IMG/VR virus record: IMGVR_UViG_3300027771_001853
Span: 233,624-297,623 of that record
Strand: one strand, 5' to 3'
Length of the DNA: 64,000 nucleotides
Under the pieces are notes generated by a model. The model searched no databases, had not been told where the DNA came from, and was given only the letters and a program-made list of their open reading frames with translations. Below, piece after piece: positions 15,204 to 60,978 of the stretch. Each line of letters opens with the position of its first letter. Position 1 is the first letter of the stretch. Both the position numbers and the translations under genes were made by a program.

Positions 15204-16553
15204 TTAAGATTTTAAACCTTTTCTACTAATCTCTGTAACCTTACCATTACTGTTAAACACTAAAGAACCTTTAGTATTTTTACCAACTACTTCAATGTTG
15301 TCATTTTCAGTTAAGAATTTTCTACTAGCTGATTCTTGTTCAATAGTTTCGGTATGTTCCAAGATAGAAGTTATCTTTCTTGCTTTGGTTAACTTAGAGT
15401 CTAAAAAGTTGTTTCTTTTTTGTTTATTATTTGCTTTTTCTTCTTTACTAACTTTAAAGTAATTGTTAATCACACTACTTACTTTATCGTAACCTTCAGC
15501 AAGTTCTTCCCCGTCTGTTGGTTGGAATATGTTAGCTAATTCATCATCACTGAAATCCATTTTAGTTCCTGATTTTTTAAAACTTCTTAGTGTTTTTTCT
15601 AAAGCTTTTTCTCCGGCCCAACCACCTATTGCTGCTCCTGCTGCACCCATCATAGCTGGGATGTTTTCGTCTAAATCCAAATCACCACCATCGTCTCCCA
15701 TATCAAAATCCATTTCCATTTCTTCGTCGTCTCCCATATCAAATTCTTCTTCACCACTAGACTCCATATCACCCATGTCATCTAAATCATCATATTCAGA
15801 ATCAGTCTCTTCAAATTTTTCTACAATCTCTTCTCTATCTTCAGAATCTAGATTATCTAAATTAACAGCGGAAATAACCGAATTTAACACATATTTTATC
15901 GTTTCAGAATCTAATGCACCTTGACCATCAGCTTTACGTAATTTTTGACCCAATTTACCAGTTAGTTTTTGGATACTTTTAACAGCGTCTTCTTCTTCAG
16001 CACCATCACCACCTTCAACATCAATGTCCATATCCATTTCCATTTCTTCATCATCACCTTCATCACCACCTTCAACATCCATATCCATATCCATCTCTTC
16101 ACCTTCAATACCCATATCGTCACTACCCATATCCATATCGAAATCCATATCTTCTTCTACTTCAGGTTCTGGTGTTGGTAAGTCTATTTTTAGTACTTTT
16201 TTTTGTTCCTCTATAACCCCGTAATTGTTAGCCTCATTAATCGACTTCATTTTGAAGTTTAGTCTTTTTAATGCTGTAGAATAAGAAGTAAAAGTTTCGT
16301 TTCTATTTGCTGACCCTAATTGCCCATCAATATGTGAAAGGTTATTTTCGTCTTTACCAGATTTTATGAAATACTGTTTATTCTCTTTTATTATAGCATA
16401 AACATTACCATCCTGCCCTTTAACACTATAATGGGTATTAGAATAATTTGTTACGTTACTAGGTTTACTACTAATTCCCGCTATTTGTTTTATTCTTTCT
16501 ATTTTTTCTTGTAATGGTAGTTTTTCACTCCCCACTGGTTTTAATGCACTCAT
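15204..16553 (-). CDS. acidic low-complexity protein, scaffold-like
   Basis: 449 aa with (D/E/M/G)-rich tracts like the 4997..6478 scaffold; LQEKIERIKQIAG N-terminus. Confidence 0.65.
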   Translation of the reverse strand: MSALKPVGSEKLPLQEKIERIKQIAGISSKPSNVTNYSNTHYSVKGQDGNVYAIIKENKQYFIKSGKDENNLSHIDGQLGSANRNETFTSYSTALKRLNFKMKSINEANNYGVIEEQKKVLKIDLPTPEPEVEEDMDFDMDMGSDDMGIEGEEMDMDMDVEGGDEGDDEEMEMDMDIDVEGGDGAEEEDAVKSIQKLTGKLGQKLRKADGQGALDSETIKYVLNSVISAVNLDNLDSEDREEIVEKFEETDSEYDDLDDMGDMESSGEEEFDMGDDEEMEMDFDMGDDGGDLDLDENIPAMMGAAGAAIGGWAGEKALEKTLRSFKKSGTKMDFSDDELANIFQPTDGEELAEGYDKVSSVINNYFKVSKEEKANNKQKRNNFLDSKLTKARKITSILEHTETIEQESASRKFLTENDNIEVVGKNTKGSLVFNSNGKVTEISRKGLKS

Positions 16554-16577
16554 TTTTAATATTTTTATTTTTTTTAT

Positions 16578-17006
16578 TTAACTAAATTGTCCTGGTCCCC
16601 CTAGACTACTACCACCTAACGTATTTGGGTAGAAAGTATATCCACTATAAATACCTGGGCCACCTAACTGTCCAGGTGGGTCTGTTGCTGTACTATTATC
16701 TGGGTTAAAAGGCCACATTTTTTCTCTCATGGTCTGTCTTTCATCCTCATAACAATCATGACAACTACATGTAAAACACGCATCAGTTAAAGTACCACCA
16801 ACATGAGTTACAATCATATCTAGTGTACTCCCTGCCGGTATCGCTACTACAGCACCATTAAGTACTAGATTAGCCACAGCACCTCTAGCGTATACTGAAG
16901 TACATGTTATCCCAGACAAACGCCCGGTAGGCATCTGCATAAACGGTTGTATGTCTGCACCGCAGTATAATTTGTCACTCGAGCTGTTATCGTATCCTAT
17001 TGCCAT
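16578..17006 (-). CDS. Gly/Cys/Thr-rich hypothetical protein
   Basis: 142-aa ORF with upstream TATTTATA motif at 17028-17035. Confidence 0.6.
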   Translation of the reverse strand: MAIGYDNSSSDKLYCGADIQPFMQMPTGRLSGITCTSVYARGAVANLVLNGAVVAIPAGSTLDMIVTHVGGTLTDACFTCSCHDCYEDERQTMREKMWPFNPDNSTATDPPGQLGGPGIYSGYTFYPNTLGGSSLGGPGQFS

Positions 17007-17056
17007 ATTGTAAGTCTATTTGTTTCTTATAAATACTTCGATTAAAAAGAAAAAAT

Positions 17057-17818
17057 TTATATAGTTAATATGTTATCTATAAGTTTATTCTTTAAATCAA
17101 TTAATTTTTTAATATACCCGTTTCTTCTTAGTACTTTGAAGACCAAATTCTCATAAGAATATTCACCACCAGACTCTAATCCACAGCTTCTGTATTTCTT
17201 TAATTTAGCTTTAATGTCTTCAATTTCTTTTAGGGTTTTTTCTGGTTTAAGATTCTTAGACCTTTCCACTAACCTGTCTATAGCGTCTACCCAGTTAGTT
17301 GCTTTCTCATCTAACTTTTTATCATCTATGGTTACGTGTTGGTAGGAGGGTTCAACTATCCATTTATTGTATAGTACCGAGTACACACCACTAGAATGGT
17401 GTACTTCTCTATAGTCTTGTGAGTATATTTCTACCTCATAACCGTCTATAGTAATATCGTGGGTACTATTCCATATGGTTTTTTTACTATTTAAGTAATT
17501 TCTGACAAGTTCACTATTTTCGTCTATTTCATTAAAATCTAAAATTATGTGTAGGTCAATGTCTGAAAATTTACTCCAATTAAAATTAGCTAAACTACCA
17601 GTCATAGTCACATCATACACATCACATTCTTGTGTGTCTATATCACAACTTAACTCTTCCATACCGGTATAGTCAAGAAATCTGTCAGAAACACTTAGTA
17701 GTGTGGACCTAACTTTAGGGTTCAAAGTGTATGTCCCGTCTTCCATTTCGTCCCATATTGATGGTGCTAAATGGTCCTTAGTTTTAAAGCTTTTTAGTAT
17801 CGATGATTTTACTCCCAT
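17057..17818 (-). CDS. Pol-beta superfamily nucleotidyltransferase
   Basis: TMTGSLANFNWSKFSDIDLHII = GS-x8-DxD motif, third acid in EVEIYSQD. Confidence 0.8.
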   Translation of the reverse strand: MGVKSSILKSFKTKDHLAPSIWDEMEDGTYTLNPKVRSTLLSVSDRFLDYTGMEELSCDIDTQECDVYDVTMTGSLANFNWSKFSDIDLHIILDFNEIDENSELVRNYLNSKKTIWNSTHDITIDGYEVEIYSQDYREVHHSSGVYSVLYNKWIVEPSYQHVTIDDKKLDEKATNWVDAIDRLVERSKNLKPEKTLKEIEDIKAKLKKYRSCGLESGGEYSYENLVFKVLRRNGYIKKLIDLKNKLIDNILTI

Positions 17819-17842
17819 AACTTATAAATATTTTATAAATAA

Positions 17843-17868
17843 AAAATGGTTGCAATTGCAACCATTTT
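17843..17868. repeat. perfect 26-bp palindrome
   Basis: AAAATGGTTGCAA-TTGCAACCATTTT, no spacer, flanked by A- and T-rich tracts. Confidence 0.9.
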
Positions 17869-18496: not shown

Positions 18497-20374
18497 TTAT
18501 TCCTTAACCTCTTCATATTCCACATCGGTAGTACTTTCTTCTACTGGTGGTTCTTGATTTACGTCCTCTTCCCCTTCTTGGGTAGTTTCGTAAAGTTTAG
18601 TACTTATTTCGTTCCAATCACTAGTTAGTTTTTCCTTTAAGGTTGTTATAGTTTCCATATTTTTACCTTCTACGGCCTCTTTTAGTTCTTTTAAAGCACT
18701 TTCTAATTTAGTTTTATCTGAGTCGTCTAATTTATCACCAAATTCTTCAATTTGTTTTTCTGTTTGGAAGATTAGTCCATCTGCCTCATTTAAAGTATTA
18801 ACATCTTCTTTCTTTTTCTTGTCTTCTTCTGCGTTTGCTTCAGCATCTGATTTCATTTTTTGGATTTCCTCATCAGACAAACTACTACCGGACTCAATCT
18901 TAATATTATGTTCTTTACCGGTACCCTTATCTTTAGCTTTAACAGTTATTATCCCATTAGCGTCAATATCAAATGTTACCTCAACCTGTGGAATCCCTCT
19001 AGGTGCTGGTGGAATGTCTGTTAGTTGGAACCTACCTAGTGTTCTATTATCTGGTGCCATAGACCTTTCTCCTTGTAAGACATGAATGTCTACCGCTGGT
19101 TGGTTATTTACCGCTGTGGAGAAAACTTCACTTTTGGACGTTGGTATTGTTGTGTTTGATTCTATTAACGTTGTCATCACACCACCCATAGTTTCTATAC
19201 CAAGTGATAGTGGGGTCACATCTAACAATAAAACATCCTTAACATCACCAACTAACACACCACCTTGTATAGCAGCTCCCATCGCTACAACCTCATCCGG
19301 ATTAACTCCTTTAGATGGTTTCTTTTTAAATAATTTTTCTACAGCTGATTGTATGATTGGTATCCTAGTTGACCCACCAACTAAAATTATCTCATCAATC
19401 TCAGTAACTTTTAAACCAGCATCTTTAATTGCCTTTCTACAAGGTGTTAAACTTTTCTTAACTAAAAATTCAACCATAGACTCAAACTTCGCTCTAGATA
19501 ATGTACGAACTAGATGTTTTGGTCCAGTAGTGTCGGCAGTTAAATAAGGTAAGTTTAGTTCTGTAGTTGTTGAGTTAGAGAGTTCTACTTTTGCTTTTTC
19601 AGCCGCTTCTCTTAGACGTTGTAAAGCAGAAGGGTCTTCACTTATATTCATACCACTTTCTTCCTTAAACTCTTCAAGTAACCAATCAACAATCACCTCA
19701 TCAAAATTATCACCACCTAAATGTGTGTCACCATTTGTGGATTTTACTTCGAACACACCACCAGATATTTCCAATATAGAAATGTCAAAAGTACCACCAC
19801 CTAAATCATAAACAGCGATAGTTTTATCTTTTGTCTCGTTTATACCGTACGCTAATGCTGCAGCAGTTGGTTCGTTGATGATTCTTAGTACGTTTAGTCC
19901 CGCGATTTCACCAGCTTCTTTTGTAGCTTGTCTTTGTGAATCATTAAAGTATGCTGGTACCGTTATTACCGCGTCTGTTACCGTTTCTCCTAGGTATTCT
20001 TCTGCTGTTTTTTTCAGATTCTGTAATATTACAGCTGATATTTCTTGTGGAACGTATGTTTTACCATCTACAACCACATTAACATTTTCGTCACTACCTT
20101 TTTTTACTGTATAAGCCATTTTTTTAGCTTCTTTACTTACCTCATCAAACTTACTACCTATAAAACGTTTTACAGAGTAAATTGTATTTGTTGGGTTTGT
20201 TACTGCTTGTCTTTTTGCTGGGTCCCCAACAACTCTATCACCATCTTTAAACGATATAACCGAAGGTGTTGTTCTTTTACCCTCCGAATTAACAATTATT
20301 GTGGGTGACCCACCTTCTACTACTGAAACACATGAGTTTGTAGTACCTAAATCTATTCCAATTACTTTTGTCAT
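18497..20374 (-). CDS. dnaK: Hsp70 chaperone DnaK
   Basis: [62 protein letters not shown]. Confidence 0.98.
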
Positions 20375-20375
20375 A

Positions 20376-20837
20376 TTAACTTATTTTTATTTGTTTTTTA
20401 TTATTACTATTTTTTACTAATTTAGGTATAACTATACCTAAAACACCATTTTCTACCTTTGCTTTAATATTGTCGATATCAACATTATCTGGTAACCTAT
20501 AATCCAACTCTAGTTCTGTATTATAGAACTCTCTTCTTAAATAAGTTATTTTCTCCGCTTTACTGTCATATAAGTCATGATGCTCTTCAGCTACTGACGT
20601 TACCACTAAAACCCCATTTTCTACTATTACCGTGATATCGTTTTTTGTTAGTCCTGGGGCTTGCATTTCTAACATATAAGATTTGTTAGTTTCTAACAAA
20701 TTACTCCTATAACTACCTAACCCACCATAACTCGAATCTTTAGTTTTGTTAAAGTTTTCATCTTGTTGTTCATGAAGGTTATCAGTAAAGAAATCATCAA
20801 TGACTCTAGTTAAATCTGCTTTTGTTTTGTAATCCAT
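20376..20837 (-). CDS. small heat-shock protein (Hsp20, alpha-crystallin domain)
   Basis: [19 protein letters not shown] and [25 protein letters not shown]; start reassigned to MDYKTK. Confidence 0.92.
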
Positions 20838-21057: not shown

Positions 21058-23106
21058 ATGAAAGAAATAATAAAATCGTCATTCTCGGGTATCGAAGAAG
21101 ATGGAGCTCAAAGTAAAAAACCAAAGAAAAGTAAATCAGAGAAAACATCTAGAACACCCATATTAGATAACTTTTCTAGAGATTTAATAAAATTAGCTAG
21201 TGAAGGAAAATTAGACCCTGTGGTCGGTAGACAAGCTGAAATAACTAGAGTAGCACAAATATTATGTAGGAGAAAGAAAAATAATCCTGTTTTGATAGGT
21301 GGTCCTGGTTGTGGTAAAACAGCTTTGGCTGAGGGATTGGCACTTAAAATACATAGTGGTAAATGCCCACGTAACTTATTAGATAAAAAAATAGTTGCAT
21401 TAGAACTAACTAGTTTAGTTGCTGGTACAAAATACAGGGGACAATTCGAAGAAAGAATGAAAGCTGTATTGGAGGAATTAAGGGATAATCCAGATATTAT
21501 AATTTTTATAGACGAATTACATACTGTCGTAGGTACAGGAAATTCATCTGGTTCACTAGATGCAGCTAATATCTTTAAACCAGCTTTAGCTAGAGGTGAA
21601 CTACAATGTATAGGAGCTACCACATTAGATGAGTATAGGGAGAATATAGAAAAGGATGGTGCATTAGAAAGAAGGTTCCAAAAAGTTATGGTAGAACCAA
21701 CCACTGTAGAGGAAACATTAAAGATATTAACCAACCTTAAATCGAAATACGAAGACCACCATAAAGTGGTTATTAGTAACGAAATACTAAAACTTTGTGT
21801 TCAATTAGCTGAAAGATATATAACACATAGAGAATTTCCTGATAAAGCTATCGATATAATGGATGAGGTTGGTGCTAAGGTACAAGTAGATATAGAGTTC
21901 CCAGATGAAATAGAAAATTTACGTAAGAGCATTGGTAAGTTGGGTGATGAGAAAAAATCAGTAGTTAAGTCACAACAATATGAAAAGGCAGCACACCTTA
22001 GAGATAAGGAATTAAAATTAATAACTAAGTTGGATGATTTAAAACTTGCGTGGGAAATAGAAATGGAGGAGCAAAGGACAGTTGTAAGTGTGGACGATTT
22101 ATACACTGTGGTTTCTCAGATGACAAAAATACCATTAGCTAGATTATCTGAAAATGAAATGGCTAGTTTAATAGAATTAGAATCACAGTTAAAAAACTAT
22201 GTAGTTGGTCAAGATGAAGCTATTGAAAAAGTTTGTAAAGCTATAAGAAGAAATAGAGTTGGTATTAGAGATGGTTCTAAACCTATAGGTACGTTTATGT
22301 TTTTAGGTCAAACAGGTATAGGTAAAACACATTTAGCTAAATCACTAGCAAAAGAAATATTTGGTTCTGAAGATTCTCTTATTAGGGTAGATATGTCAGA
22401 ATATCAAGAAAAATTTAACACTTCTAGGTTGATAGGTTCTCCTCCTGGTTACGTTGGGTACAACCAAGGTGGTCAATTAACTGAAGCCGTTAGAAATAAA
22501 CCCTACAGTGTTGTATTATTTGACGAGATAGAGAAAGCACATCCAGATGTTTTTAACGTACTTCTACAGGTGTTCGATGATGGGCATATGACTGATGGTA
22601 TGGGTAGAGTTATTAATTTTAAAAATACGTTAATAATTATGACATCCAATATTGGTGTTAAGAAACTACAGGAGTTTGGTAGTGGTATAGGTTTTGATAC
22701 CTCCGCTAGATTAGAGAAAAAAGAAGAAGCGATGAAAGATATTATAGCATCACAATTAAAAAAATCTTTTAGTCCAGAATTCCTAAACAGGGTAGACGAC
22801 ACTATTGTATTTAACCAGTTAGATGAAAAGAACATAGAAGGTATTGTAGAAATGGAACTTAACAACCTTAAGAAAAGATTATTAGATAAAGATTACAATA
22901 TAACGTTCAATGCTTCGGTTAAGAAATTTATAGCTAAAGAATCGTATGATGAAAAGTTTGGTGCAAGACCATTAAAAAGAATGATTCAAAATAAAATAGA
23001 GGACTTTATTTCAGAAGAAATTTTAAAAGGTAAAATAAAAGAAAAAAGCCGTTATTCTATTAGTATGGATAAAAAGACTGAGAAACCTAAATTAAAGAGT
23101 CTTTAA
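21058..23106 (+). CDS. clpC: ClpC-type AAA+ unfoldase lacking the N-terminal Clp-repeat domain
   Basis: GGPGCGKT, IFIDELH, AGTKYRGQFE, UVR-like QQYEKAAHLRDKE, GQTGIGKT, PPGYVGY, LFDEIEK, ClpP-docking GIGF; only about 30 residues before the first ATPase-proximal helix. Confidence 0.9.
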   Translation: MKEIIKSSFSGIEEDGAQSKKPKKSKSEKTSRTPILDNFSRDLIKLASEGKLDPVVGRQAEITRVAQILCRRKKNNPVLIGGPGCGKTALAEGLALKIHSGKCPRNLLDKKIVALELTSLVAGTKYRGQFEERMKAVLEELRDNPDIIIFIDELHTVVGTGNSSGSLDAANIFKPALARGELQCIGATTLDEYRENIEKDGALERRFQKVMVEPTTVEETLKILTNLKSKYEDHHKVVISNEILKLCVQLAERYITHREFPDKAIDIMDEVGAKVQVDIEFPDEIENLRKSIGKLGDEKKSVVKSQQYEKAAHLRDKELKLITKLDDLKLAWEIEMEEQRTVVSVDDLYTVVSQMTKIPLARLSENEMASLIELESQLKNYVVGQDEAIEKVCKAIRRNRVGIRDGSKPIGTFMFLGQTGIGKTHLAKSLAKEIFGSEDSLIRVDMSEYQEKFNTSRLIGSPPGYVGYNQGGQLTEAVRNKPYSVVLFDEIEKAHPDVFNVLLQVFDDGHMTDGMGRVINFKNTLIIMTSNIGVKKLQEFGSGIGFDTSARLEKKEEAMKDIIASQLKKSFSPEFLNRVDDTIVFNQLDEKNIEGIVEMELNNLKKRLLDKDYNITFNASVKKFIAKESYDEKFGARPLKRMIQNKIEDFISEEILKGKIKEKSRYSISMDKKTEKPKLKSL

Positions 23107-37379: not shown

Positions 37380-37459
37380 TATAAATACTTTGTAACATAT
37401 TATAAATATTTTCGTATACCCTATTAGTTAATTAAAAAAAACATTATCTTTGTATTATG
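37380..37459. repeat. copy A of an 80-bp bidirectional promoter cassette
   Basis: First 37 nt identical and 68/80 identical without gaps to 47191..47270. Confidence 0.92.
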
Positions 37460-37627
37460 ATTAAAAAAAGTGGGTATAAATTAGTGAGTGTGGGGTTCAG
37501 TGACCCCAGAGGTATAGAAATTGGTCGATTACTCGTTAAAAAACAAGCTATATTATCACACTTTTCTATGAATAAATTCTACTACTGGATAAAAAACGGA
37601 ATAAAATTGTCTAACCTTAAAAAATAA
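37457..37627 (+). CDS. 56-aa hypothetical protein (not in ORF track)
   Basis: MIKKSGYKLVSVGFSDPRGIEIGRLLVKKQAILSHFSMNKFYYWIKNGIKLSNLKK; ATG 4 nt after TATCTTTG. Confidence 0.55.
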   Translation: MIKKSGYKLVSVGFSDPRGIEIGRLLVKKQAILSHFSMNKFYYWIKNGIKLSNLKK

Positions 37628-47190: not shown

Positions 47191-47270
47191 TATAAATACT
47201 TTGTAACATATTATAAATATTTTCGTACACCATATTAGTAACCAATAAAAATTAATATCTTCGTAATATG
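47191..47270. repeat. copy B of the 80-bp bidirectional promoter cassette
   Basis: See 37380..37459; ends at the ATG of the first CAP gene. Confidence 0.92.
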
Positions 47271-48389: not shown

Positions 48390-49661
48390 CTAAGTGGTAG
48401 CGACTGGTTCACAAGGATTAAACGGTCCAAATAATGCACACTTTTGTTTATAACTTCTACATCCCTTGTAACTTTTTACCTTACTAGCTTCTGCATCTAA
48501 TAAGGTTTCCCCTTTACCGTTTACCATAGTTATAAAAGGTACTTCAGAATGTGGGTCCGAGGATAATCCTTTAATTTGTAATGTTAATTCACCTGGTTCC
48601 CACTTCGACCCTTCACCAGTGTTAGCCACTATTTTTTGTAGTTGTTCTTGTGTTACAGCAAATGTACCCTTTCTACTTAAACCATCTTCAAGATTATTTA
48701 AGTTTACTTTACCTACTGGTACGTCATTTAGGAAAAATGCAAATTTTGCTCTATCACATTTATGATACGCTGTACTCGCACGACCATTATTAAAACTAGA
48801 CACAGCTTGTTTTACGTGATAACCACTTAGTGGTCGTCCTTTTGCTAACGCAGCCGTTACATAATAACCACACGTTATTTGGAGATTATTTGTACATTCT
48901 TCAAAGTCACCAAATTCAGATTTTTCAGATGTATAAGCAAAATCTAACGTAGTATCAACAAACTGTCCTGGGTTTTTGAAGCTCTTACTACAGTTTGGGT
49001 CTCTTTTACATTTTTCATCCGTTAAACCACCGGTACTAACTATACTAGAGGTTACTGTTTCTTTTATTGCTGGGAATATTTTTACACCTTTTGCTATTAA
49101 GGCCGTTTTAAGTGCAGCTAAAAATTTTGTACTTCTTCTTTGAGCTAGAGCTTTATTAGCTTTCCAGTTATCTGTCGTGTTATCACTTAAAGAACCATAA
49201 CCGTCAGGGAATACGTTAGGATTAGTGTAGTAATTTAAATTAGGATTACTCTTGTAGTCATTATCCACTTCAGGTTGTAAAGGTGTTTTATACCAGTTAC
49301 TAGCACCACTTCTAATATTTGCTGTAGCTAGTTGGAGTTCCCCTTTTTCTAGTGCTAATTTCATATCAGCGTCGGAATCAATAGTTGCTACAATACCATC
49401 AACAAACTGTTTTAAGAATTTACTTGGGTCGTCCTTGTTAACCGCGTACATACCTATTTCGTTATAATTTTTTTTAAGGTTCTTAGTTTTCATACCCATA
49501 AAGACCTTTCCATCAACAACATCACCAATCTCTAAACCTTCACTATCTTGTTCCGTAATCAAACTAGGGTTACATAATTTAGTCCCCCAACCAGATATGT
49601 TTTTAGACTGTCTTTTTCTTATATGAGCTTTCTCAGCTTCTGTTAATTTTAATCTTGGCAT
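48390..49661 (-). CDS. KLTE-leader protein with large unknown cargo
   Basis: MPRLKLTEAEKAHIRK...LITEQ; ALAQRRS segment faintly OmpA-C-like; upstream TATTTATA. Confidence 0.72.
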   Translation of the reverse strand: MPRLKLTEAEKAHIRKRQSKNISGWGTKLCNPSLITEQDSEGLEIGDVVDGKVFMGMKTKNLKKNYNEIGMYAVNKDDPSKFLKQFVDGIVATIDSDADMKLALEKGELQLATANIRSGASNWYKTPLQPEVDNDYKSNPNLNYYTNPNVFPDGYGSLSDNTTDNWKANKALAQRRSTKFLAALKTALIAKGVKIFPAIKETVTSSIVSTGGLTDEKCKRDPNCSKSFKNPGQFVDTTLDFAYTSEKSEFGDFEECTNNLQITCGYYVTAALAKGRPLSGYHVKQAVSSFNNGRASTAYHKCDRAKFAFFLNDVPVGKVNLNNLEDGLSRKGTFAVTQEQLQKIVANTGEGSKWEPGELTLQIKGLSSDPHSEVPFITMVNGKGETLLDAEASKVKSYKGCRSYKQKCALFGPFNPCEPVATT

Positions 49662-51972: not shown

Positions 51973-52131
51973 ATGAAAGAAATAGACCAAATGTTAGAAC
52001 AATGGATACCAGTAAATACCATTATTAGGAAACAACTAAGAGATTTAATAGTTAAAGAAATAGAAAAAGAAAGAACCAGGGAAAGGATAAAACTATTAAC
52101 CTGGGATAACCAATTAAAAAATAAAAGATGA
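51973..52131 (+). CDS. 52-aa hypothetical protein (not in ORF track)
   Basis: MKEIDQMLEQWIPVNTIIRKQLRDLIVKEIEKERTRERIKLLTWDNQLKNKR; stop overlaps ligase ATG. Confidence 0.55.
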   Translation: MKEIDQMLEQWIPVNTIIRKQLRDLIVKEIEKERTRERIKLLTWDNQLKNKR

Positions 52132-53432
52132 ATGAAAATTTAAAAAAAATACAAGGTATGGTGGACGAACTAAAATCCACCAACGCGACAAATGAAAAAA
52201 TTACAATCCTTAAAAAATATAAAGACGATGAATATCTTTGTGCTATACTAGAAACTGTATATTCCCCATTTAAACAATTCTATGTGACCAGTAAGACCTG
52301 TAAAAAAAATAAGAAATTAGTTAACGAACATTACCTTGGTAGTGTTGATATGTTGTTATATAATCTAAGTGGTAGGGTTTGGACCGGTCATGACGCAATC
52401 TCATACATTAATGGACTAGTCTCCAACTACCCAGAATATGAAGAACTAATATATTCACTTATAGATAAAAACTTAAAGACAAGAACGGGAGCGGACCTAA
52501 TAAACAAAGCAATACCAGGATGTGTCCCAACTTTTAAGGTAGCGTTAGCTAACTCTTATGATAAACAAAAGGGTAAGGTTAATTTTGACACACAAAAATG
52601 GTTTGCCTCACATAAGTTAGATGGGGTTAGATGTTTAGCTATAATAGATGAAAATGGAAATTGTAATTTCTTCTCAAGACAAGGTAAGACATTCGATACT
52701 TTAGATGTACTTAAAAATGAAATAGAGAGTTTAGATTTGTGTAATATGGTACTTGATGGTGAAGTGTGTATTGTCGATGAAAATGGAGCAGAAGACTTTC
52801 AAGGTATTATGAAAGAGATTAAAAGAAAAGACCACACAATCCAAAATCCTAAGTACAAAGTATTTGATTACTTAATGTCAGATGAGTTTGACAGCCAAAA
52901 AAGTAAACGTACATTGAGTGATAGGTTAGGTAAGTTTAACATGATATATAATACATTTGGAAAAGAGTTAAAATGTATTGACGTGTTAGGTCAGTGGGAA
53001 GTAGAGTCAGAAGACCACTTTCAGGAACTCGCAGAACTTGCAACAAAAAATAATTGGGAAGGTTTAATCTTACGTAAAGATTGTGAGTATAAAGGTAAAA
53101 GAAGTAATGACCTACTTAAGGTTAAAAAATTCTTTGACGAAGAATATGTGGTTACTGGTGTCGAGAACTCAATACATAGAATAATTGTAGATGGCTTAGA
53201 GGTGGAAGAAGAAATGCTTAGTAATGTAATTATTGAACATAGGGGTTGTGATGTTGGTGTCGGTTCTGGGTTTAGTCAAGAAGAAAGAAAACTGTACTTT
53301 AAAAGACCGGAACTTATTATTGGTAAAACAATAACTGTTCAATATTTTGAAGAGACTTTAAACCAGGATGGTTGTCATTCTTTACGATTTCCTGTGGTTA
53401 AACATGTGTTTGAAAATGGTAGAAATGTATAA
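52128..53432 (+). CDS. lig: ATP-dependent DNA ligase
   Basis: SHKLDGVRC (KxDG), LDGEVC, KVFDYL, WEGLILRK, LLKVK, VGSGF, SLRFP. Confidence 0.96.
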   Translation: MNENLKKIQGMVDELKSTNATNEKITILKKYKDDEYLCAILETVYSPFKQFYVTSKTCKKNKKLVNEHYLGSVDMLLYNLSGRVWTGHDAISYINGLVSNYPEYEELIYSLIDKNLKTRTGADLINKAIPGCVPTFKVALANSYDKQKGKVNFDTQKWFASHKLDGVRCLAIIDENGNCNFFSRQGKTFDTLDVLKNEIESLDLCNMVLDGEVCIVDENGAEDFQGIMKEIKRKDHTIQNPKYKVFDYLMSDEFDSQKSKRTLSDRLGKFNMIYNTFGKELKCIDVLGQWEVESEDHFQELAELATKNNWEGLILRKDCEYKGKRSNDLLKVKKFFDEEYVVTGVENSIHRIIVDGLEVEEEMLSNVIIEHRGCDVGVGSGFSQEERKLYFKRPELIIGKTITVQYFEETLNQDGCHSLRFPVVKHVFENGRNV

Positions 53433-53555: not shown

Positions 53556-56030
53556 ATGAAATTTACAATAGATTTAAAGGAGGTCTGTCTTGACGACATA
53601 CCATTAGTAGGTGGTAAAAACGCGTCACTAGGTGAGATGATTCAAAATTTAACTAAAGTAGGTATAAAAGTACCAGGTGGTTTTGCTGTCACTTCTGATG
53701 GTTATTGGGAGTTTTTACGTTATAATGGTTTAAAAACTATAATTAGGAAATTAGTGGAATCCATCAAGGAAGACGATGTGGTGTCATTAAGAAAGGTCGG
53801 TAATGAAGTTAGACAAATTATAAGAAATGGAAAATGGCCACAAGAACTAAAAGATGAGATTAGAGAAAAGTATAATCAGATGTGTGAAGAGTACGGACAC
53901 GACATGACTGATGTAGCTGTTCGTTCATCAGCTACAGCTGAAGATTTACCTGACGCGTCTTTTGCCGGTCAACAAGAAACCTATTTAAATGTTAGGGGTC
54001 CAGAAACATTATTAGAGTCCGTTAGGAATTGTTTTGCTTCCCTTTTTACTGATAGAGCAATTTCATACAGGGGTACTTTTGGTTTCGACCACTTCAACGT
54101 AGCTCTTTCGGTATGTGTACAAAAAATGGTTAGAACCGACTTAGGTTCTTCCGGTGTAGCGTTTTCTATAGATACGGATAGTGGTTTTAAAGATACTGTA
54201 TTGATTAACTCGTCTTATGGTTTAGGTGAAATGGTTGTACAAGGTTCTGTATCTCCTGATGAGTTCCTAGTATTTAAACCAACACTAGAAAAGGGGTTTA
54301 GTTCTATTATAGAAAAAAAGATGGGTATAAAAGACAATAAAATGATTTACGGTAGTGACCCAGGTAAATTAACGAAAATAGTACAAATACAAGAATCACA
54401 ACAAAAAGAATTTTCTATAAGTGATAAACAAGTATTAAAAATTGCTGAATGGGTTACTTTTATAGAAAGGTATTATTCGGAACGTAAGGGGTCGTGGTGC
54501 CCTATGGATATAGAATGGGGTATAGATGGTATGACTAACGAATTACACATACTACAGGCTAGACCAGAAACAATACATTCTCGTAAGACTAATGATACTT
54601 TGGTTGAGTATAAACTACAAAAGAATGACGACAATAAAGTAAAATTAAAAGGTATAGCTGTTGGTGACAGGATAGGTTGTGGTGAAGTAAGGATACTCCA
54701 TTCAATAGATGGTAGAGATGGTAGTCTTGATGGTGCTGATTTTAAGGCTGGTGATGTGTTAGTAACTGATATGACCGACCCAGACTGGGAACCTTTAATG
54801 AAAAAAGCTAGTGCTATAGTAACAAATAAGGGTGGTAGAACTTGTCACGCTGCAATTGTAGCTAGGGAATTGGGTGTCCCAGCGTTAGTGGGTTGTGTAA
54901 ATGCTACAGAAAAACTTGTAGATAATGAAGTGGTTACTGTAAGTTGTACAGAAGGTGATGTGGGGTTTGTTTATGAGGGGGAAGTTAAATACGATAAAAT
55001 AGAAACATCACTTAAAGACCTACCAGAAGTTAAAACACCAATAATGTTAAATGTGGCTTCACCAGATTTAGCTTTTAAATTCTCGAGTCTACCACATAGT
55101 GGTGTTGGTTTGGCTAGAGAAGAATTCATAATAAACAATTATATAAAAGCTCACCCACTTGCTTTATTGAGACATAAGGGTTTGGGTGACGAAAAATTAA
55201 GTAAATCTATAGAACAACTAACACAAGGGTATAAGGATGAGGAAACTTTTTTCGTTAAAAGATTGTCTTATGGTGTAGCAAAAATAGCTTCAGCTTTTTA
55301 CCCACAAAAAGTTATTGTTAGGTTATCTGATTTTAAAACTAATGAATATAGAAATTTATTAGGAGGAGAGTACTTCGAACCAGTAGAGGAAAACCCAATG
55401 ATTGGTTGGCGTGGAGCTTCAAGATATTACTCAGAAGAATATAAAGAGGCTTTCGGAATGGAGTGTAAAGCGATTAAAAGAGTTAGGGAAAAAATGGGAT
55501 TAAGTAATGTAACTATTATGATTCCTTTTTGTAGGACAGTAGAAGAATTACATAAGGTTTATGGTGTAATGAAAGAATATGGTTTAGAACGAGGTAAAGA
55601 TGGGTTAGAGGTTTATTTAATGGCCGAGTTACCCTCAAACATTATACTAGCTGAAAGTTTTGCAAAACATATAGACGGGTTTTCAATTGGTTCTAACGAC
55701 CTAACACAATTAACCTTAGGTTTAGATAGAGACTCTTCTTTAGTTGCTCACTTATACGACGAAAGAAACGAATCGGTTAAAGAATCAATTAGGACACTTA
55801 TAAAGGTGGCTAAAAAAACTAAAACAAAGGTGGGTATATGTGGACAAGGACCTTCAGACTTCCCTGATTTTGCTTCGTTTTTAGTTGAGGAAGGGATAGA
55901 TAGTATATCGGTTACCCCCGATTCCCTACTTAAAACTTTAAAGACACTTAGTCGTCTTGAACGGGATTCAGATATTAGGTATTCTGCCTCTATAGATGGA
56001 CCAGGTCAACCAGTTAAAGAAATTTATTAA
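53556..56030 (+). CDS. ppsA: phosphoenolpyruvate synthase (pyruvate, water dikinase)
   Basis: VGGKNASLGEM, VAVRSSATAEDLPDASFAGQQETYLN, GGRTCHAAIVARELG (phospho-His), EENPMIGWRGASRY, FSIGSNDLTQL, GICGQ. Confidence 0.97.
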   Translation: MKFTIDLKEVCLDDIPLVGGKNASLGEMIQNLTKVGIKVPGGFAVTSDGYWEFLRYNGLKTIIRKLVESIKEDDVVSLRKVGNEVRQIIRNGKWPQELKDEIREKYNQMCEEYGHDMTDVAVRSSATAEDLPDASFAGQQETYLNVRGPETLLESVRNCFASLFTDRAISYRGTFGFDHFNVALSVCVQKMVRTDLGSSGVAFSIDTDSGFKDTVLINSSYGLGEMVVQGSVSPDEFLVFKPTLEKGFSSIIEKKMGIKDNKMIYGSDPGKLTKIVQIQESQQKEFSISDKQVLKIAEWVTFIERYYSERKGSWCPMDIEWGIDGMTNELHILQARPETIHSRKTNDTLVEYKLQKNDDNKVKLKGIAVGDRIGCGEVRILHSIDGRDGSLDGADFKAGDVLVTDMTDPDWEPLMKKASAIVTNKGGRTCHAAIVARELGVPALVGCVNATEKLVDNEVVTVSCTEGDVGFVYEGEVKYDKIETSLKDLPEVKTPIMLNVASPDLAFKFSSLPHSGVGLAREEFIINNYIKAHPLALLRHKGLGDEKLSKSIEQLTQGYKDEETFFVKRLSYGVAKIASAFYPQKVIVRLSDFKTNEYRNLLGGEYFEPVEENPMIGWRGASRYYSEEYKEAFGMECKAIKRVREKMGLSNVTIMIPFCRTVEELHKVYGVMKEYGLERGKDGLEVYLMAELPSNIILAESFAKHIDGFSIGSNDLTQLTLGLDRDSSLVAHLYDERNESVKESIRTLIKVAKKTKTKVGICGQGPSDFPDFASFLVEEGIDSISVTPDSLLKTLKTLSRLERDSDIRYSASIDGPGQPVKEIY

Positions 56031-56068: not shown

Positions 56069-56428
56069 ATGAAGTTAACAAAACAACAATTAAATAAAAA
56101 ACTAAGGTCAAAAATACTAACACTACAAGCACGGAAAAAAAATCTAAAGGATTTACGAATTATGGTGGTTAGGGCAAGAAACGTAGATGTAACAAATGTT
56201 TTGTACCGTCACACTTCTGTAACTGTAAAAATATCAGGAGAGGTTAAATCCAGTAACGACAAATGGCTTCCTTTACAACTTTATAGACCAAACCAAATTA
56301 GAAAATTTTTACGTAGGAAGGATGTCGGTATAGTTGAATCTGTAAGTAAGTGGGTTAGATTGTGGGGTTTTGATAGTGATGTGTCCCTAGAGACGATAGA
56401 CATTGTTAATAAGGTTTTACCTAATTAA
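56069..56428 (+). CDS. basic hypothetical protein
   Basis: ATG 4 nt after TATCTTTG (56057-56064). Confidence 0.65.
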   Translation: MKLTKQQLNKKLRSKILTLQARKKNLKDLRIMVVRARNVDVTNVLYRHTSVTVKISGEVKSSNDKWLPLQLYRPNQIRKFLRRKDVGIVESVSKWVRLWGFDSDVSLETIDIVNKVLPN

Positions 56429-56947
56429 ACTAACTTGTCCTGTATAGTGTTGGTTGTGGGTCCTAATTGAATACCCGTATACACCTATTTGACAACCCTT
56501 ACCATCCCAGGGGCTATTATTTGTAGTCTCATATATTTTCTCACCCCACCTATTAAAAATTATCATCAATTCTATATCACCCTTGTCAGCACCATGCACA
56601 TAAAAAGTCTCATTGGAGTTATCTTCGTTTGGTGTAAAAGAGTTAGGTACGAATATTTGTAGGTAGGGACAGTCCTCTATTATTACTTCGTGGTACGAAG
56701 TATCACCTTCACACCCAAACCTTGTAGTATAAACAGATATTATGTACGTACCTATAGAGTCAGGCCATTGTACTGTAATTGAATTCCCTTGGTCGTATAT
56801 GATTTGACCTTGTGAAATATCCCAGTAATATAATTTATCCACATCATAACTTACTTGGTATTCTTGTGGTACTATGTCACCACAATTCGTATAAGTTTCT
56901 TGTGCGAATAATTGCAGTGGTAGTAATATGTATACTAACCACTTCAT
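56417..56947 (-). CDS. secreted protein: PKD-like domain plus type IX secretion type B C-terminal domain (gliding-motility-associated CTD)
   Basis: Signal MKWLVYILLPLQLFAQ; IFVPNSFTPNEDNSNETF, IFNRWGEKIYET, WDG, GVYGYSI, TGQVSLIR-stop. Confidence 0.88.
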   Translation of the reverse strand: MKWLVYILLPLQLFAQETYTNCGDIVPQEYQVSYDVDKLYYWDISQGQIIYDQGNSITVQWPDSIGTYIISVYTTRFGCEGDTSYHEVIIEDCPYLQIFVPNSFTPNEDNSNETFYVHGADKGDIELMIIFNRWGEKIYETTNNSPWDGKGCQIGVYGYSIRTHNQHYTGQVSLIR

Positions 56948-56948
56948 A

Positions 56949-57491
56949 TTAAAAGTGTTGTATTGGTCCTGTTACCGGTCCGTTATTTACTATAACATTG
57001 ATGGTTGTATTACAACCTGCCATTGAGTAAGTTAGTACGTAGTTTCCTACACCTGCTGTTGATGGTTGGAATGTATTAGCTACTACACCTGTTCCTGTCC
57101 ATGTACCACCTAACGGGGTACCTACTAATGGTGTTGTTGGGTCACCAGGACAAAAAGGTCCTATGACATTCCCAGATAAATCTAACACAAACACGTCTAA
57201 TAGTACCGGCGTTCCAGGACAGTTGGCAGCGTTTGATTCTATTACCTCAATTGCGTTTGGGTAAAGTCCTGAACCAACTCCCGTGTAATCCACGGTAATT
57301 GAATTCGTTCCTTGTCCTGTACTTAATGTTCCACCACCTGTAACTACCCAATTATATGTTGACGTTGGTGTGTTTGTTACAAAGTATTGTTCCCCAGTTG
57401 CGTTTACACACACTGTGTCTGGGTTGATTGTTGTTTGTCCGTATGTTGCTAACCCGAAGCAAACTAATAGAACTGTAAGTAATTTTTTCAT
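56949..57491 (-). CDS. secreted protein with two PKD/Ig-like domains
   Basis: Signal MKKLLTVLLVCFGLATYGQ; TYNWVVTGGG...GQGTNSITVDY; GGTWTGTGV....F.PSTAGVGNYVLTYS; ends GPVTGPIQHF. Confidence 0.8.
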   Translation of the reverse strand: MKKLLTVLLVCFGLATYGQTTINPDTVCVNATGEQYFVTNTPTSTYNWVVTGGGTLSTGQGTNSITVDYTGVGSGLYPNAIEVIESNAANCPGTPVLLDVFVLDLSGNVIGPFCPGDPTTPLVGTPLGGTWTGTGVVANTFQPSTAGVGNYVLTYSMAGCNTTINVIVNNGPVTGPIQHF

Positions 57492-57557
57492 AGTTTTTGT
57501 TTTTTTTTGTTTATGTTTTGTCTTGTTTTCTCGTGAATAAACAAGACAAAGTTATTA

Positions 57558-58121
57558 TTAATAATGATTTATGTTCGACGTAATGGGTGTTACTACTTGA
57601 ACGTTTCCGTTGTATATGTTAAAGGCTGGGTCAGTACAACACGCCCCATTGTTCCAACCACCAGTAAGACAATCTCCTATTACGTTTATACCAATAGACA
57701 AATCATCAGGAGTACATGTTGGTCCTACAGTTACTCTAAATCTCATTGTGAATGGTCCTGTTGAACTACTTCCCCAGTCTGGATTAAAACCTGTGTTAAT
57801 AAATCTCCATCCAGGTCCAAAATTTAATCCACTTGGGTACGTATTTTGTACATCCCACGTCCAGGTTCCAGGTTGTGTTCCTCCACCTACTGGAGTTATT
57901 AATGGTATTAAGTTAGTCCATCCTGTCCCTAAGTTAATTTGAAATGCGATTATCCAATTTATGTTTAGTTGTGTGAATGTCCCTAATGTATAATCCACAG
58001 CGACAACATCTCCTGGTTGATATGGTCCAACTGGTGTCATAGTAAACGACTGATTTGAGACACACTGTGAATGAACGGTTAAGTTAATAAATAAAAATAA
58101 TACAAATAATAGTCTTTTCAT
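57558..58121 (-). CDS. secreted beta-rich protein
   Basis: Signal MKRLLFVLFLFINLTVHSQ; ends TPITSNINHY; upstream TATTTATA 58139-58146. Confidence 0.75.
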   Translation of the reverse strand: MKRLLFVLFLFINLTVHSQCVSNQSFTMTPVGPYQPGDVVAVDYTLGTFTQLNINWIIAFQINLGTGWTNLIPLITPVGGGTQPGTWTWDVQNTYPSGLNFGPGWRFINTGFNPDWGSSSTGPFTMRFRVTVGPTCTPDDLSIGINVIGDCLTGGWNNGACCTDPAFNIYNGNVQVVTPITSNINHY

Positions 58122-58176: not shown

Positions 58177-58689
58177 TTATGTAATACCTTGTTCTTTTAA
58201 TATTCTTTTAATTAATTTTTTGCTTTCTGAAAGATTACGTAATTTAATTAAGTCTCTTTTTATTCTAGCTACATTAATCCTTAATAAATCTACATTGTCC
58301 CTATCTCTCCTACTTTTATATCCTTTTTTGGACATTAATTCATCTAAGTATTCCTGACTAACCTCTAACTCTTTAATTTTTTGTAATATCTGTGGGGACT
58401 CTAATTCTTTCTCTGGTTTTACTGGTGGTGGTGGTGGTTCTGGTACCTCATCTATAGTTAATGATTTTATATAGTCTTCTGGTGAGTCTATATATTTTTC
58501 TAGTTCGGAAACCCCTCTTTTCAATACGTTTTCCATAGCTTGTCTAGTTAACCTTAAATTAAGTGAGTCTGTAATATCAGGAATATCCATAGATAGGATT
58601 TCAGATTTGTCAGCTTGTTTAATTACGTCTAACAAACTAATCTCATTAATTATTTTATTATACTGATTCTTATTAACTAGTATTTTCAT
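58177..58689 (-). CDS. leader-bearing hypothetical protein
   Basis: MKILVNKNQYNKIINE; PPPPP linker; C-terminal LSESKKLIKRILKE. Confidence 0.68.
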   Translation of the reverse strand: MKILVNKNQYNKIINEISLLDVIKQADKSEILSMDIPDITDSLNLRLTRQAMENVLKRGVSELEKYIDSPEDYIKSLTIDEVPEPPPPPVKPEKELESPQILQKIKELEVSQEYLDELMSKKGYKSRRDRDNVDLLRINVARIKRDLIKLRNLSESKKLIKRILKEQGIT

Positions 58690-59556: not shown

Positions 59557-59604
59557 ATAATTAAATGTAACGAATAAAAACATAAATTTCCAATATTTAT
59601 TGAT

Positions 59605-59811
59605 ATGAGAGTTACAAAATCAAGAAGTATATTGAAAGCTGTGAGTTGGAGAGTTATAGGAACGTTAGATACTATGGCTCTAGGGTGGTTAGTAACCGGA
59701 AGTCCGTTACTAGGTTTAAAAATAGGGGCACTAGAATTAGTGACTAAATTTGCCCTATATTATATGCACGAAAGAATATGGTTAAAATGTAAGTTTGGTA
59801 CTAAGGATTAA
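59605..59811 (+). CDS. DUF2061 membrane protein
   Basis: SILKAVSWRVIGTLDT...KFALYYMHERIW. Confidence 0.85.
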   Translation: MRVTKSRSILKAVSWRVIGTLDTMALGWLVTGSPLLGLKIGALELVTKFALYYMHERIWLKCKFGTKD

Positions 59812-60266
59812 TTAGAAATACCTGTACCTAAAACCTTGAGTGCGTCTCCTAGTCCACTTGCTAATGCTGATACACTTTTTACACCTAGACAAGTAAGAAC
59901 ACCAGTTAAATTAACAGCTTTCTCAAAACTCATTTGACAATTAGGGTTTTGCATTATGTTCATCATTTCACATTCTGAATTTTCCGTCATCCAAGTTTTA
60001 AGTGAATCATCATCACACTCCTTCAACATTTGTTGAAGTTTTGTTTTGTTCTCATTACCCAACTCAGTCCAAAACATTTTCCAATCCTGAGGTGATGATT
60101 GTGTATTTTCCCCCATATCTTGTTCTGGTTCATCTTGTTTAAATCCGTGACCAAATGCAGCTCCTGTAGGGGTTTCTTTTATTAAAGTTCCGTGTTGATT
60201 TTTGTGAGAATTGTGAAGTCCTCTAATCCTATCTTTTTCTGACTCTGTTAAGTTAATTTTTTTCAT
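59808..60266 (-). CDS. LTESEK-leader protein
   Basis: MKKINLTESEKDRIRGLH...LIKE. Confidence 0.72.
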   Translation of the reverse strand: MKKINLTESEKDRIRGLHNSHKNQHGTLIKETPTGAAFGHGFKQDEPEQDMGENTQSSPQDWKMFWTELGNENKTKLQQMLKECDDDSLKTWMTENSECEMMNIMQNPNCQMSFEKAVNLTGVLTCLGVKSVSALASGLGDALKVLGTGISN

Positions 60267-60284
60267 TGTGTTTTTTTTTTTGAT

Positions 60285-60566
60285 TTAGTTTATGTTACCA
60301 CTTGTGTTTATATAATCATCCGCTTTATTTAAATAATCCGCGGCTAATGTAATTTTATCCATCCACCAAGTAGGTAATTCACCACCAACCTGTTGTAATT
60401 CAGCTAATTTCTCTAATATATCGTCAGCGTTATCTAAAATTAGTTTACATTTTCTAATAGCTGAAGGAATATCTGTATGACCATCCTCATTTAAAGTTAT
60501 TTTTTTACCCTTAATAACTTTTTCTATAAGATTTACTAGTTCTGATTCTTTAATTTCAACTTTCAT
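60285..60566 (-). CDS. KESEL-leader protein
   Basis: MKVEIKESELVNLIEKVIKG..ITLNE; LPTWWMDKITLAADYL. Confidence 0.72.
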   Translation of the reverse strand: MKVEIKESELVNLIEKVIKGKKITLNEDGHTDIPSAIRKCKLILDNADDILEKLAELQQVGGELPTWWMDKITLAADYLNKADDYINTSGNIN

Positions 60567-60576
60567 GGTATATTAC

Positions 60577-60978
60577 TTATATTCTTTGTCCGTCTGTTCC
60601 CTTACCTGATTGACACCAACTATGTAAAGCTTTTAATACTGGTTTATCAGTTCCACAAGCTCTAGGACATCCACCCCTGTGTGAATGTTTACAATATTCC
60701 ATTAAAATTTCTTCAGTAAGGTTATTGGTTAGGTCTCCCATGTTCTTCAACCACTCCAACGGATTCCATTCGGTTTCTGAGTCTGGTGAAGTTTCACTAG
60801 ACGTAGATTTTACTGCATCAGTATTACGTGATTGTTCACCAACGTCTTGTCTACTATTAAACTTATCCAACCTATCCGAACCTTCTTGTTTGGTTACGAA
60901 CCCAGATTGTTCATTGATGTGGTGTAGACCTTTGATTCTGTTCTTTTCTTCCTCACTAACTTTAAACTTATTATTCAT
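60577..60978 (-). CDS. VSEEEK-leader protein with C-terminal Cys motif
   Basis: MNNKFKVSEEEKNRIKGLHHINEQ; YCKH....CPRAC.......HSWC; upstream TATTTATA. Confidence 0.72.
   Translation of the reverse strand: MNNKFKVSEEEKNRIKGLHHINEQSGFVTKQEGSDRLDKFNSRQDVGEQSRNTDAVKSTSSETSPDSETEWNPLEWLKNMGDLTNNLTEEILMEYCKHSHRGGCPRACGTDKPVLKALHSWCQSGKGTDGQRI

Follow-up and report, generated by a model that had tools for sequence, protein, structure and literature searches.

In bacteriophage T4, the prohead protease gp21 cleaves its substrates after the motif L/I-x-E (PMC9026906), and a capsid targeting sequence (CTS) of 10 residues loads the internal proteins IPI-III, and also foreign proteins, into the head (PMC9026906, PMC3012670, PMC12373910). 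The internal (Ip) proteins of the T-even phages have only this packaging leader in common and can be identified by it (PMC9026906, PMC3012670, PMC12373910). Here we describe a comparable set of leaders in a stretch of 64,000 nucleotides (the window) from the IMG/VR virus record IMGVR_UViG_3300027771_001853 (positions 233,624 to 297,623), in which eight minus-strand genes begin with one of two leader sequences, type A or type B. A first-pass annotation of the window, which stated the T4 precedent correctly, had proposed that these leaders form a portable tag for the recruitment of proteins into the head. We lean, with some caution, towards the reading that they are prohead-targeting propeptides like the T4 CTS and would be removed by the head protease, in other words that they represent a longer, multi-class and expanded variant of the known T-even mechanism rather than a conceptually new idea.

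Comparison with described systems

The leaders share their setting with the CTS of T4 IPI, IPII, IPIII and Alt, namely a T4-type head, a protease of the gp21 family and a scaffold core. In both cases an N-terminal leader stands on otherwise unrelated small proteins, ends in hydrophobic-x-Glu and belongs to genes located in variable regions. The leaders described here, however, comprise 19-37 residues compared with 10 for T4 IPIII (PMC9026906), none of them having the T4 length of about ten residues. They are also much more conserved than their T4 counterparts, fall into at least two and perhaps three classes, strongly prefer Gln after the Glu, and occur in tandem and internal copies as well as in thousands of protein clusters, while only about ten Ip types are known from the T-even phages. 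As far as can be judged from sequence alone, their cargo includes peptidoglycan binders and hydrolases, whereas that of T4 consists of restriction inhibitors. These differences in length, classes, internal copies, scale and wall-directed cargo also feed the alternative that the leader is a docking helix, which is weighed below.

A second comparison is offered by large phages with a gp21-like protease, which has diverged in phiKZ, 201phi2-1 and SPN3US. In these phages numerous proteins of the head undergo cleavage behind a Glu before they are ejected (PMC9026906, PMC7411985, PMC10052503). Their sites read S/A/G-x-E and no conserved portable leader is present, whereas here position P3 of both leader types is I/L/V/M and the leader is conserved as a whole on cargos that are unrelated. 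Gene shuffling in T4-like phages has been ascribed to PeSL promoter-terminator modules, which carry early promoters (PMC4122927). These modules resemble the repeated regulatory cassettes found here in variable regions, that is, junctions of a terminator with the heptamer TATTTAT and a duplicated 90-nt cassette. Unlike the PeSLs with their early promoters, the repeat described here can reach into the leader coding sequence, so that recombination would transfer the tag too.

Encapsulins likewise bring diverse cargo into a shell of the HK97 fold by means of a short terminal peptide, which is sufficient in their case. The cargo peptides of encapsulins, which as a rule stand at the C-terminus, attach to the shell itself and stay uncleaved, and no DNA is contained in these shells; the tag described here is N-terminal and accompanies a gp23-type capsid with portal, terminase, scaffold and protease. 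The core protein of the T7 gp16 type, a lytic transglycosylase that resides inside the head and is ejected ahead of the DNA, is a precedent for a head-borne wall-cutting enzyme, but it belongs to the core stack of a podovirus and has neither a common leader nor proteolytic maturation.

Identification of the leaders in the window

Profiles of both leaders were built from other contigs only and scanned against all 1028 six-frame segments of the window. The type A consensus, MKKIIKLTESDLxRIVKRVIxE/Q (the slash marks the putative cleavage point throughout), is represented by five open reading frames (ORFs) and the type B consensus, MKNxFIISEEEKNRILNLHESATKRxYLxE/Q, by three, all of them on the minus strand (Table 1; genes are referred to by their first coordinate). 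The outside-trained profiles recovered seven of these eight ORFs, with E-values of 7e-11 to 7e-4, while no further significant match was obtained among the 1028 segments of the window, even after iteration. The regular expressions of the first-pass annotation matched 3-5 times in the window compared with 0.00-0.04 times in shuffled proteomes, and degenerate DNA patterns gave three type A and two type B matches compared with none in shuffled sequences; such matches lie at 37299-37349 in 36771, at 47127-47177 in 46773, at 60213-60248 in 59808 and at 60922-60957 in 60577.

The type A leaders that had been assigned by eye to five ORFs were thus all recovered by the profile, as were the type B leaders of 59808 and 60577. 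The type B profile misses 48390, the third gene to which such a leader had been attributed. In five other contigs (L079, L122, L128, L161 and L212), however, the relatives of its cargo invariably begin with a canonical type B leader, which identifies that of 48390 as a decayed type B leader ending in SLITE37/Q. The presence of two type A copies in 45793 was confirmed for the second copy; the first is not significant alone by profile, but its DNA is 67% identical to that of the 46773 leader. The leader DNA of 46773 and 60285, the latter flanked by two type B genes, is 81% identical.

The cargos of the window have no similarity to each other (all BLAST E > 0.2), in agreement with the first-pass annotation. 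The cargo of 36771 is acidic and carries WESxVTRGKGNP repeats at the C-terminus, that of 46773 contains a Cys motif, that of 33615 is Gly-rich with hydrophobic segments, and in 45793 the leaders are followed by a basic tail of 50 residues (pI 10.7). As 33615 begins 3 nt past the end of 34406-36724, the two genes are probably co-transcribed.

Looser leaders ending in (I/L)xE, which had been proposed for 15204, 34406, 38375, 39447, 51001 and 58177, could not be upheld and do not exceed chance; neither profile matches them, iteration included. The motif [LI]xE occurs within the first 30 residues of 26 of 53 minus-strand and 6 of 21 plus-strand proteins, and in 32% of internal windows drawn at random. 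No leader is present on the PG_binding_1 protein 34406-36724, whose gene has a separate TATTTAT promoter, and the 15204 family has a conserved N-terminus of its own (GSEKLxGxEKInRIxxIa), the resemblance of which to type B is loose and not significant. An internal sequence of 40123-40503 (SEEDRIRELHIHENQ) is B-like by eye and received no profile support, iteration included.

Table 1. Leader genes, promoter cassette and head module genes of the window (coordinates in nt; E-values of the leader profiles or of Pfam matches).
Feature	Position	Strand	Leader or site	Evidence or remark
Type A leader protein, 197 aa	36771..37364	-	Residues 1-22, nt 37299-37364, MRKVVKLTESDIENLVRKVLKE/Y	Profile E 7e-11
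Type A leader protein, 137 aa	46773..47186	-	Residues 1-20, nt 47127-47186, MKFKLTETELVKLIEKVVSE/G	Profile E 7e-7
Two tandem type A leaders, 100 aa	45793..46095	-	Residues 1-26 and 31-49, nt 45949-46095	Second copy, profile E 1e-6
Type A leader protein, 262 aa	33615..34403	-	Residues 1-21, nt 34341-34403, MTVIKLNEKNLKNVVRKVIRE/S	Profile E 1e-5
Type A leader protein, 93 aa	60285..60566	-	Residues 1-19, nt 60510-60566, MKVEIKESELVNLIEKVIK	Profile E 7e-4
Type B leader protein, 152 aa	59808..60266	-	Residues 1-31, nt 60174-60266, MKKINLTESEKDRIRGLHNSHKNQHGTLIKE/T	Profile E 2e-8
Type B leader protein, 133 aa	60577..60978	-	Residues 1-23, nt 60910-60978, MNNKFKVSEEEKNRIKGLHHINE/Q	Profile E 1e-6
Degenerate type B leader protein, 423 aa	48390..49661	-	Residues 1-37, nt 49551-49661, MPRLKLTEAEKAHIRKRQSK...SLITE/Q	
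Divergent promoter cassette with TATTTAT, 90 nt	37380..37469	.		Duplicate 47191-47280, 83% identity
Terminase	10736-12469	-		Head module
Portal, gp20 family	8593-10443	-		Pfam Portal_T4 7e-78
Two small genes at T4 gp67 and gp68 positions	7837-8568, 7350-7781	-		Gene order
Prohead protease, T4 gp21 / S77 family	6581..7306	-	Start MRTYKLLE/A	Pfam Peptidase_S77 1.4e-25
Scaffold at T4 gp22 position, acidic	4997..6478	-		T4-like gene order
Major capsid protein, gp23 family, T4-like propeptide	3130..4968	-		Pfam Gp23 7e-72

Distribution and modularity of the leaders

Searches of IMG/VR yielded at least 120 stretches with the type A pattern and 115 with the type B pattern. In about 107 of the former and in nearly all of the latter the leader is located 3-7 residues after the ATG, and in total leaders lie at most 7 residues from the start of at least about 230 ORFs in IMG/VR viral contigs. 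Among the matches listed, the 218 downstream cargo sequences fall into 72 clusters without mutual BLAST similarity, type A as well as type B leaders being represented in four of them, and up to four leader genes are found per stretch of at most 14 kb. The tag is therefore modular and portable, as the first-pass annotation had supposed. When the 32-column type A profile was run against 1.84 billion cluster representatives (50% identity), 7,771 proteins matched at E ≤ 0.001, and nearly all of the best 150 of these matches begin at residue 1. The ten library matches that were looked up are all metagenomic and are either unnamed or called 'hypothetical protein', and a homologue search with residues 1-40 gave 31 candidates and 18 matches, all of them 'hypothetical protein'.

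Outside viruses the leaders are nearly absent. A search of 596 Gb of genomes from bacteria and archaea with the DNA pattern gave 12 stretches, 10 of which are chance internal matches. Only two are true leaders: one is on a 3-kb contig binned as Thiobacillus that has about 93% protein identity to phage contigs of IMG/VR, and the other belongs to a Bacteroidota metagenome-assembled genome (MAG), in which it lies on a contig of 164 kb. A tblastn search with both leaders against 50,697 GenBank phage records gave no match, a weak negative given the short query and the active low-complexity filter. No Pfam or PHROGs model spans the leader, all matches being located in cargo domains, the leader profile has no match among the PDB sequences, and a text search of the literature for the leader string found none. 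The leader tags of this uncultured clade have apparently not been described so far.

In a profile-profile comparison types A and B align in register over the first 18 columns (P = 2.7e-4). Since this beats all 22 controls, the result suggests that the two types form one superfamily. Both open with hydrophobic residues, after which come a T/S-E-x-D/E helix cap and a helix of amphipathic character. Two or three type A modules are found in many proteins, one at the N-terminus and the rest between domains, mostly without the MKKII start, and such tandem and internal copies fit removable modules. Two proteins (P0042 and P0054) are polyprotein-like, with Cys-rich or repeated units parted by leader-like helices.

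A third tag family, MK[IY]IITESQ[YL]KKL from residue 1 (MKIIITESQYKKL), is present in about 60 copies in the fetched loci (e.g., L040 11934-14506 and L032 1189-2931). The sequences after this tag are unrelated, the genes form arrays of up to six neighbours, and there is no fixed phi-x-E-Q end (phi denotes a hydrophobic residue). In the window, 58177-58689 is a marginal member (E 0.03) and was itself a seed. This family is probably a third leader class beside A and B.

The leader end and sites in head proteins

Conservation of the leaders ends at Glu-Gln. Type A leaders, 19-22 residues in length, end in V-I/L-x-E in 87 of 87 unique sequences, where Val and Glu were imposed by the search pattern and I/L and Gln were not. 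Type B leaders, with 20-37 residues and a mode of 30-31, end in L/I-x-E in 60 of 65 unique sequences, the position being unconstrained. The Glu is followed by Gln in 57 of the 87 type A and 37 of the 65 type B sequences, although neither pattern demanded this residue. Hydrophobic-x-E-Q is also kept by 16 of 20 scaffold relatives at residues 45-62, where it closes the N-terminal helix, the linker being variable. The scaffold of the window has an N-terminal helix followed by KKVIKE/QE (residues 53-60), which is identical to a leader end, and then a Met/Asp-rich acidic region. Because Gln follows the Glu and the same motif recurs in the scaffold, we infer that phi-x-E/Q is a processing site in this clade.

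The first-pass annotation had drawn attention to LLE-S, LLE-S and LLE-A close to where capsid, scaffold and protease, respectively, begin. All three are present, but LLE-S is not borne out as the main cleavage site of the capsid, one relative having LLK instead. The capsid N-terminus is kept in 17 relatives, and the propeptide is T4-like, with EKWNKLGFLDG and LYENQ blocks that are homologous to the T4 propeptide. Just ahead of the conserved FPIIRRVFSKLLANDIVSVQ block the capsid has I-N-E60/A, at the place where T4 gp23 has L-T-E65/A ahead of VMGMVRRAIPNLIAFDICGVQ; in T4 gp23, FLTE65/A lies upstream of the block homologous to that of the capsid, VMGMVRRAIPNLIAFD. The capsid maturation site is accordingly predicted more readily at LINE60/A than at LLE-S near the start.

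Two other origins of the leader were considered and rejected. A copy of the scaffold N-terminus is not supported, as the hhalign P-values of 0.07 (type A) and 0.09 (type B) fall within those of ten control families (0.007-0.6). Nor is the leader a Sec, Tat or lipoprotein signal peptide by its consensus: KIIKLTESDLTRIVKRVIKEQ and NKFIISEEEKNRILNLHE are charged throughout and lack a hydrophobic core of about 10 or more residues as well as a lipobox Cys, and the true signal peptides of the window (56417-58121) differ.

Linkage to head genes and the upstream motif

Leader-anchored loci were collected from other contigs, the window's own contig being left out. A capsid relative is present within 14 kb in 54 of these 231 loci, many of which also hold scaffold, protease, portal or terminase genes, and a leader ORF is present within 10 kb in 23 of 77 capsid-anchored loci. 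The leaders are linked to a T4-type head module.

Of the copies of the heptamer TATTTAT in the window, 38 are on the minus and 9 on the plus strand, and the motif is found at most 60 nt upstream of 24 of 56 minus-strand compared with 2 of 26 plus-strand genes. Among the genes behind it are the protease (18 nt upstream), the terminase, the scaffold and fibre-like genes together with the leader genes 36771 (twice, 16 and 37 nt upstream), 46773, 60577 and 48390. Each of the remaining leader genes directly follows a gene that has the motif, exactly as the first reading of the sequence had stated. In other contigs TATTTAT is the commonest 7-mer before leader genes (47 of 96 type A and 49 of 79 type B genes) and is placed 5-20 nt before the leader ATG. 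Sigma-70-type promoters are not enriched in the window (66 compared with 80 expected).

The two copies of the 90-nt promoter cassette are located upstream of two type A leader genes. Terminator hairpins stand directly before TATTTAT at 61046-61022 and 44081-44066, and in the case of 60577 the heptamer comes after the terminator 61046-61022 and 14 nt ahead of the start codon. Such terminator-plus-TATTTAT junctions and the duplicated cassette could mediate the shuffling of cassettes.

Cargo proteins

The cargo has a median length of 148 residues, and Pfam gave no match for about 55 of the 70 representatives of the cargo clusters. Recognisable cargo consists mainly of LysM, PG_binding_1, PG_binding_3, phage lysozyme and SLT domains; one esterase-like fold and one CarboxypepD_reg domain were also found, and YkuD was recorded on one protein match. 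The commonest type A cargo elsewhere (A1; L038 5818-6276 and 19 relatives) is absent from the window. It is roughly 150 residues long, contains NYMFFSNLEQ, is rich in Cys at the C-terminus and adjoins the capsid gene, and its invariant C-terminus (TKLCARGKAAAKSKFKVYPSAYANGYAVQVCKG...C) matches PHROG 27331.

AlphaFold2 models of the A1 cargo and of 48390 (A2) reached a mean predicted local distance difference test (pLDDT) score of 52.6 and 56.2, respectively, which is too poor for fold assignment. Both models show only the leader helix followed by a low-confidence linker, with a helix at residues 8-21 and disorder at residues 22-56 in 48390. The latter protein had been called nuclease-like; the top Foldseek matches of its model are instead OmpA-like domains, with weak E-values of 0.006-0.015, and the cargo may have an OmpA-like peptidoglycan-binding fold.

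Proposed role of the leaders and alternatives

In the T4-like mechanism that we lean towards, the hydrophobic start (MKKIIKL or MKNxFII), the helix cap and the amphipathic helix would carry the tagged protein into the scaffold core, and the gp23-type shell would assemble around the core with the tagged proteins in it. The S77/gp21-type protease would then cut after the Glu at the leader end, at V-I/L-x-E/Q in type A and at L/I-x-E/Q in type B, and the mature cargo would stay inside the head and exit alongside the DNA when the phage infects. The tag would move as a cassette, in many cases accompanied by its TATTTAT promoter, and duplication and recombination would join it to new genes, giving rise to an open-ended set of cargo proteins.

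Several observations weigh against this mechanism. The leader of 60285 ends in VIKG and has no terminal Glu. Hydrophobic-x-E is a motif of low information, phi-x-E-Q occurring 21 times in the window with 13.5 expected, and the similarity between leader and scaffold is no better than that of controls (P = 0.07), leaving only the terminal motif in common. The tags are 2-3 times as long as the T4 CTS and far more conserved, and may do more than the CTS or something else. Among the best type A representatives, 47 of 149 have tandem or internal copies; the internal ones are usually without the hydrophobic start and could mean that the helix still serves a function in the mature protein. Of the cargos that can be recognised, none recur but peptidoglycan binders or hydrolases, and in T4-like phages such wall proteins serve the tail or lysis, not the head. 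Finally, tblastn found no cultured relative among the GenBank phages.

Many of the same observations would be accommodated if the leader were an uncleaved docking helix or an address to the portal, neck, tail or baseplate, where wall-active cargo could work at entry. We regard this as rather unlikely, yet as the best of the alternatives. It would account for the enrichment of LysM, PG_binding, lysozyme and SLT domains in the cargo, to which the possible OmpA-like fold of 48390 and the single YkuD may be added, for the helix copies between domains that lack the hydrophobic start, for the missing Glu of 60285, and for the linkage of the tag to structural genes and their upstream motif. Without cleavage, however, the near-invariant Glu followed by Gln at the very point where conservation ends is left unexplained, and the head protease is indicated by the scaffold, in which this motif recurs. 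Moreover, we know of no tail assembly pathway that uses such a tag.

A more speculative extension of head loading, which we consider doubtful and slightly less probable still, is that the tags form a multi-class address system in which the classes A, B and C (the MKIIITESQ type) differ in destination or in order of release. One set would stay with the DNA into the cytoplasm, while a wall-active set would be expelled first and would open the wall or anchor at it, and cleavage within the head would split polyproteins with several leaders into a number of effectors. If so, the myovirus head would be a programmable multi-compartment delivery device, and in thousands of uncultured phages the complete set of injected proteins could be deduced from sequence.

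It is improbable that the leader has no part in capsid loading and, as a propeptide, regulates or inhibits lysis and wall enzymes, keeping them inactive or taking them to the envelope at a late stage of infection. Several cargos are indeed lysozyme, transglycosylase or peptidoglycan-binding proteins, with endolysin-like matches in PHROGs, and the upstream motif is common to them and to the structural genes, for which late expression is presumed. On this explanation, however, one would not expect about 55 of the 70 cargo cluster representatives to lack a cell-wall domain, nor up to four leader genes per 14 kb and eight in the 64-kb window, which is far above the need for lysis; in addition, the charged leader lacks a hydrophobic core suited to membrane export.

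No more probable is a recognition tag for phage chaperones (Hsp70, ClpB and Hsp20) that would keep aggregation-prone small proteins soluble or unfolded. All three chaperones are encoded beside structural genes, ClpB relatives are present in 16 leader-anchored loci, and DnaK prefers hydrophobic cores with basic flanks, of which KIIKL and RIVKRVI are examples. Set against this, Hsp70 is present in only one fetched locus and Hsp20 in none, and chaperone sites need neither a fixed N-terminal position nor a helix cap nor a terminal Glu-Gln. A chaperone role could coexist with loading into the head.

That the leaders have no common function at all, being the inheritance of one paralogous family or an RNA-level element of translation start, is hardly credible even though leader DNA is 67-81% identical between some window genes and MKK-type starts are frequent in AT-rich genomes: the leader is kept at a mean column identity of 58% across contigs while the cargos are unrelated, conservation spans 20-35 residues with specific polar positions, and the third codon positions at invariant residues vary freely (entropy 1.2-1.8 bits), which argues for selection on the peptide and rules out the RNA-level element.

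If head loading is correct, a profile of 20-35 residues would identify, in a very large uncultured clade of Bacteroidota phages, those proteins that are packaged and probably also injected. With at least 598 capsid contigs and at least 7,771 tagged clusters that are now 'hypothetical', the clade would offer a rich and already sorted supply of candidate proteins for anti-defence, for host takeover and for activity on the cell wall. The T4 leader strategy would then be old and scaled far beyond the about ten T-even Ip types, and the leaders would be natural tags to load proteins into the capsids of Bacteroidota phages. They also provide a way to ask whether a myovirus head can carry cell-wall enzymes.

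Head module and neighbouring genes

The window forms the final 64 kb of its contig (297,623 bp), three loci fetched from this contig being identical to parts of it, and has a G+C content of 34%. Its minus strand carries a head module of the T4 type, as judged from Pfam and PHROGs matches and from the gene order, which is that of T4 20-67-68-21-22-23. Despite its position, 7350-7781 has no sequence similarity to gp68. The protease matches the PHROG head maturation protease (1e-44) and is 34% identical to T4 gp21, spanning the ELNHP and SSRGxGS motifs. Both the scaffold and 15204-16553 are very acidic, with Met/Asp-rich repeats (MDMDMD...). The glycosyltransferase gene 1788-3185 overlaps the end of the capsid gene.

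The window has no nucleotide match among the GenBank phages, and the closest GenBank phage capsid, that of Flavobacterium phage immuto, is only 36% identical; in IMG/VR the capsid family comprises at least 598 contigs. A protein with the CHU_C domain, a type IX secretion signal, and the true leader match in the Bacteroidota MAG point to a host among the Bacteroidota. The CHU_C domain is on one of three adjoining small proteins with N-terminal signal peptides (56417-58121), which appear to be phage-encoded, secreted proteins of host type.

Adjoining the structural genes are those of Hsp70/DnaK (18497-20374, Pfam 1.8e-258) and Hsp20 (20376-20837), and on the strand opposite to these two that of a ClpB-type double AAA+ protein (21058-23106). 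Two giant repetitive proteins, 23103-28529 and 28531-31866 (1808 and 1111 aa), are probably fibres. Their repeats are rich in Gly/Asn/Ser, both contain the blocks 'TTY..GLNV' and 'HAKW', and they have no Pfam match and almost no relatives among the fetched loci. A transfer-messenger RNA (tmRNA) is encoded at 32903-33312 on the plus strand (Rfam RF00023, 89.6 bits with a gathering score of 47, full model length), whereas ARAGORN reported nothing in the window, this tmRNA included. Auxiliary genes of the window encode an enzyme like phosphoenolpyruvate synthase or pyruvate phosphate dikinase (53556-56030) and an ATP-dependent DNA ligase (52128-53432).

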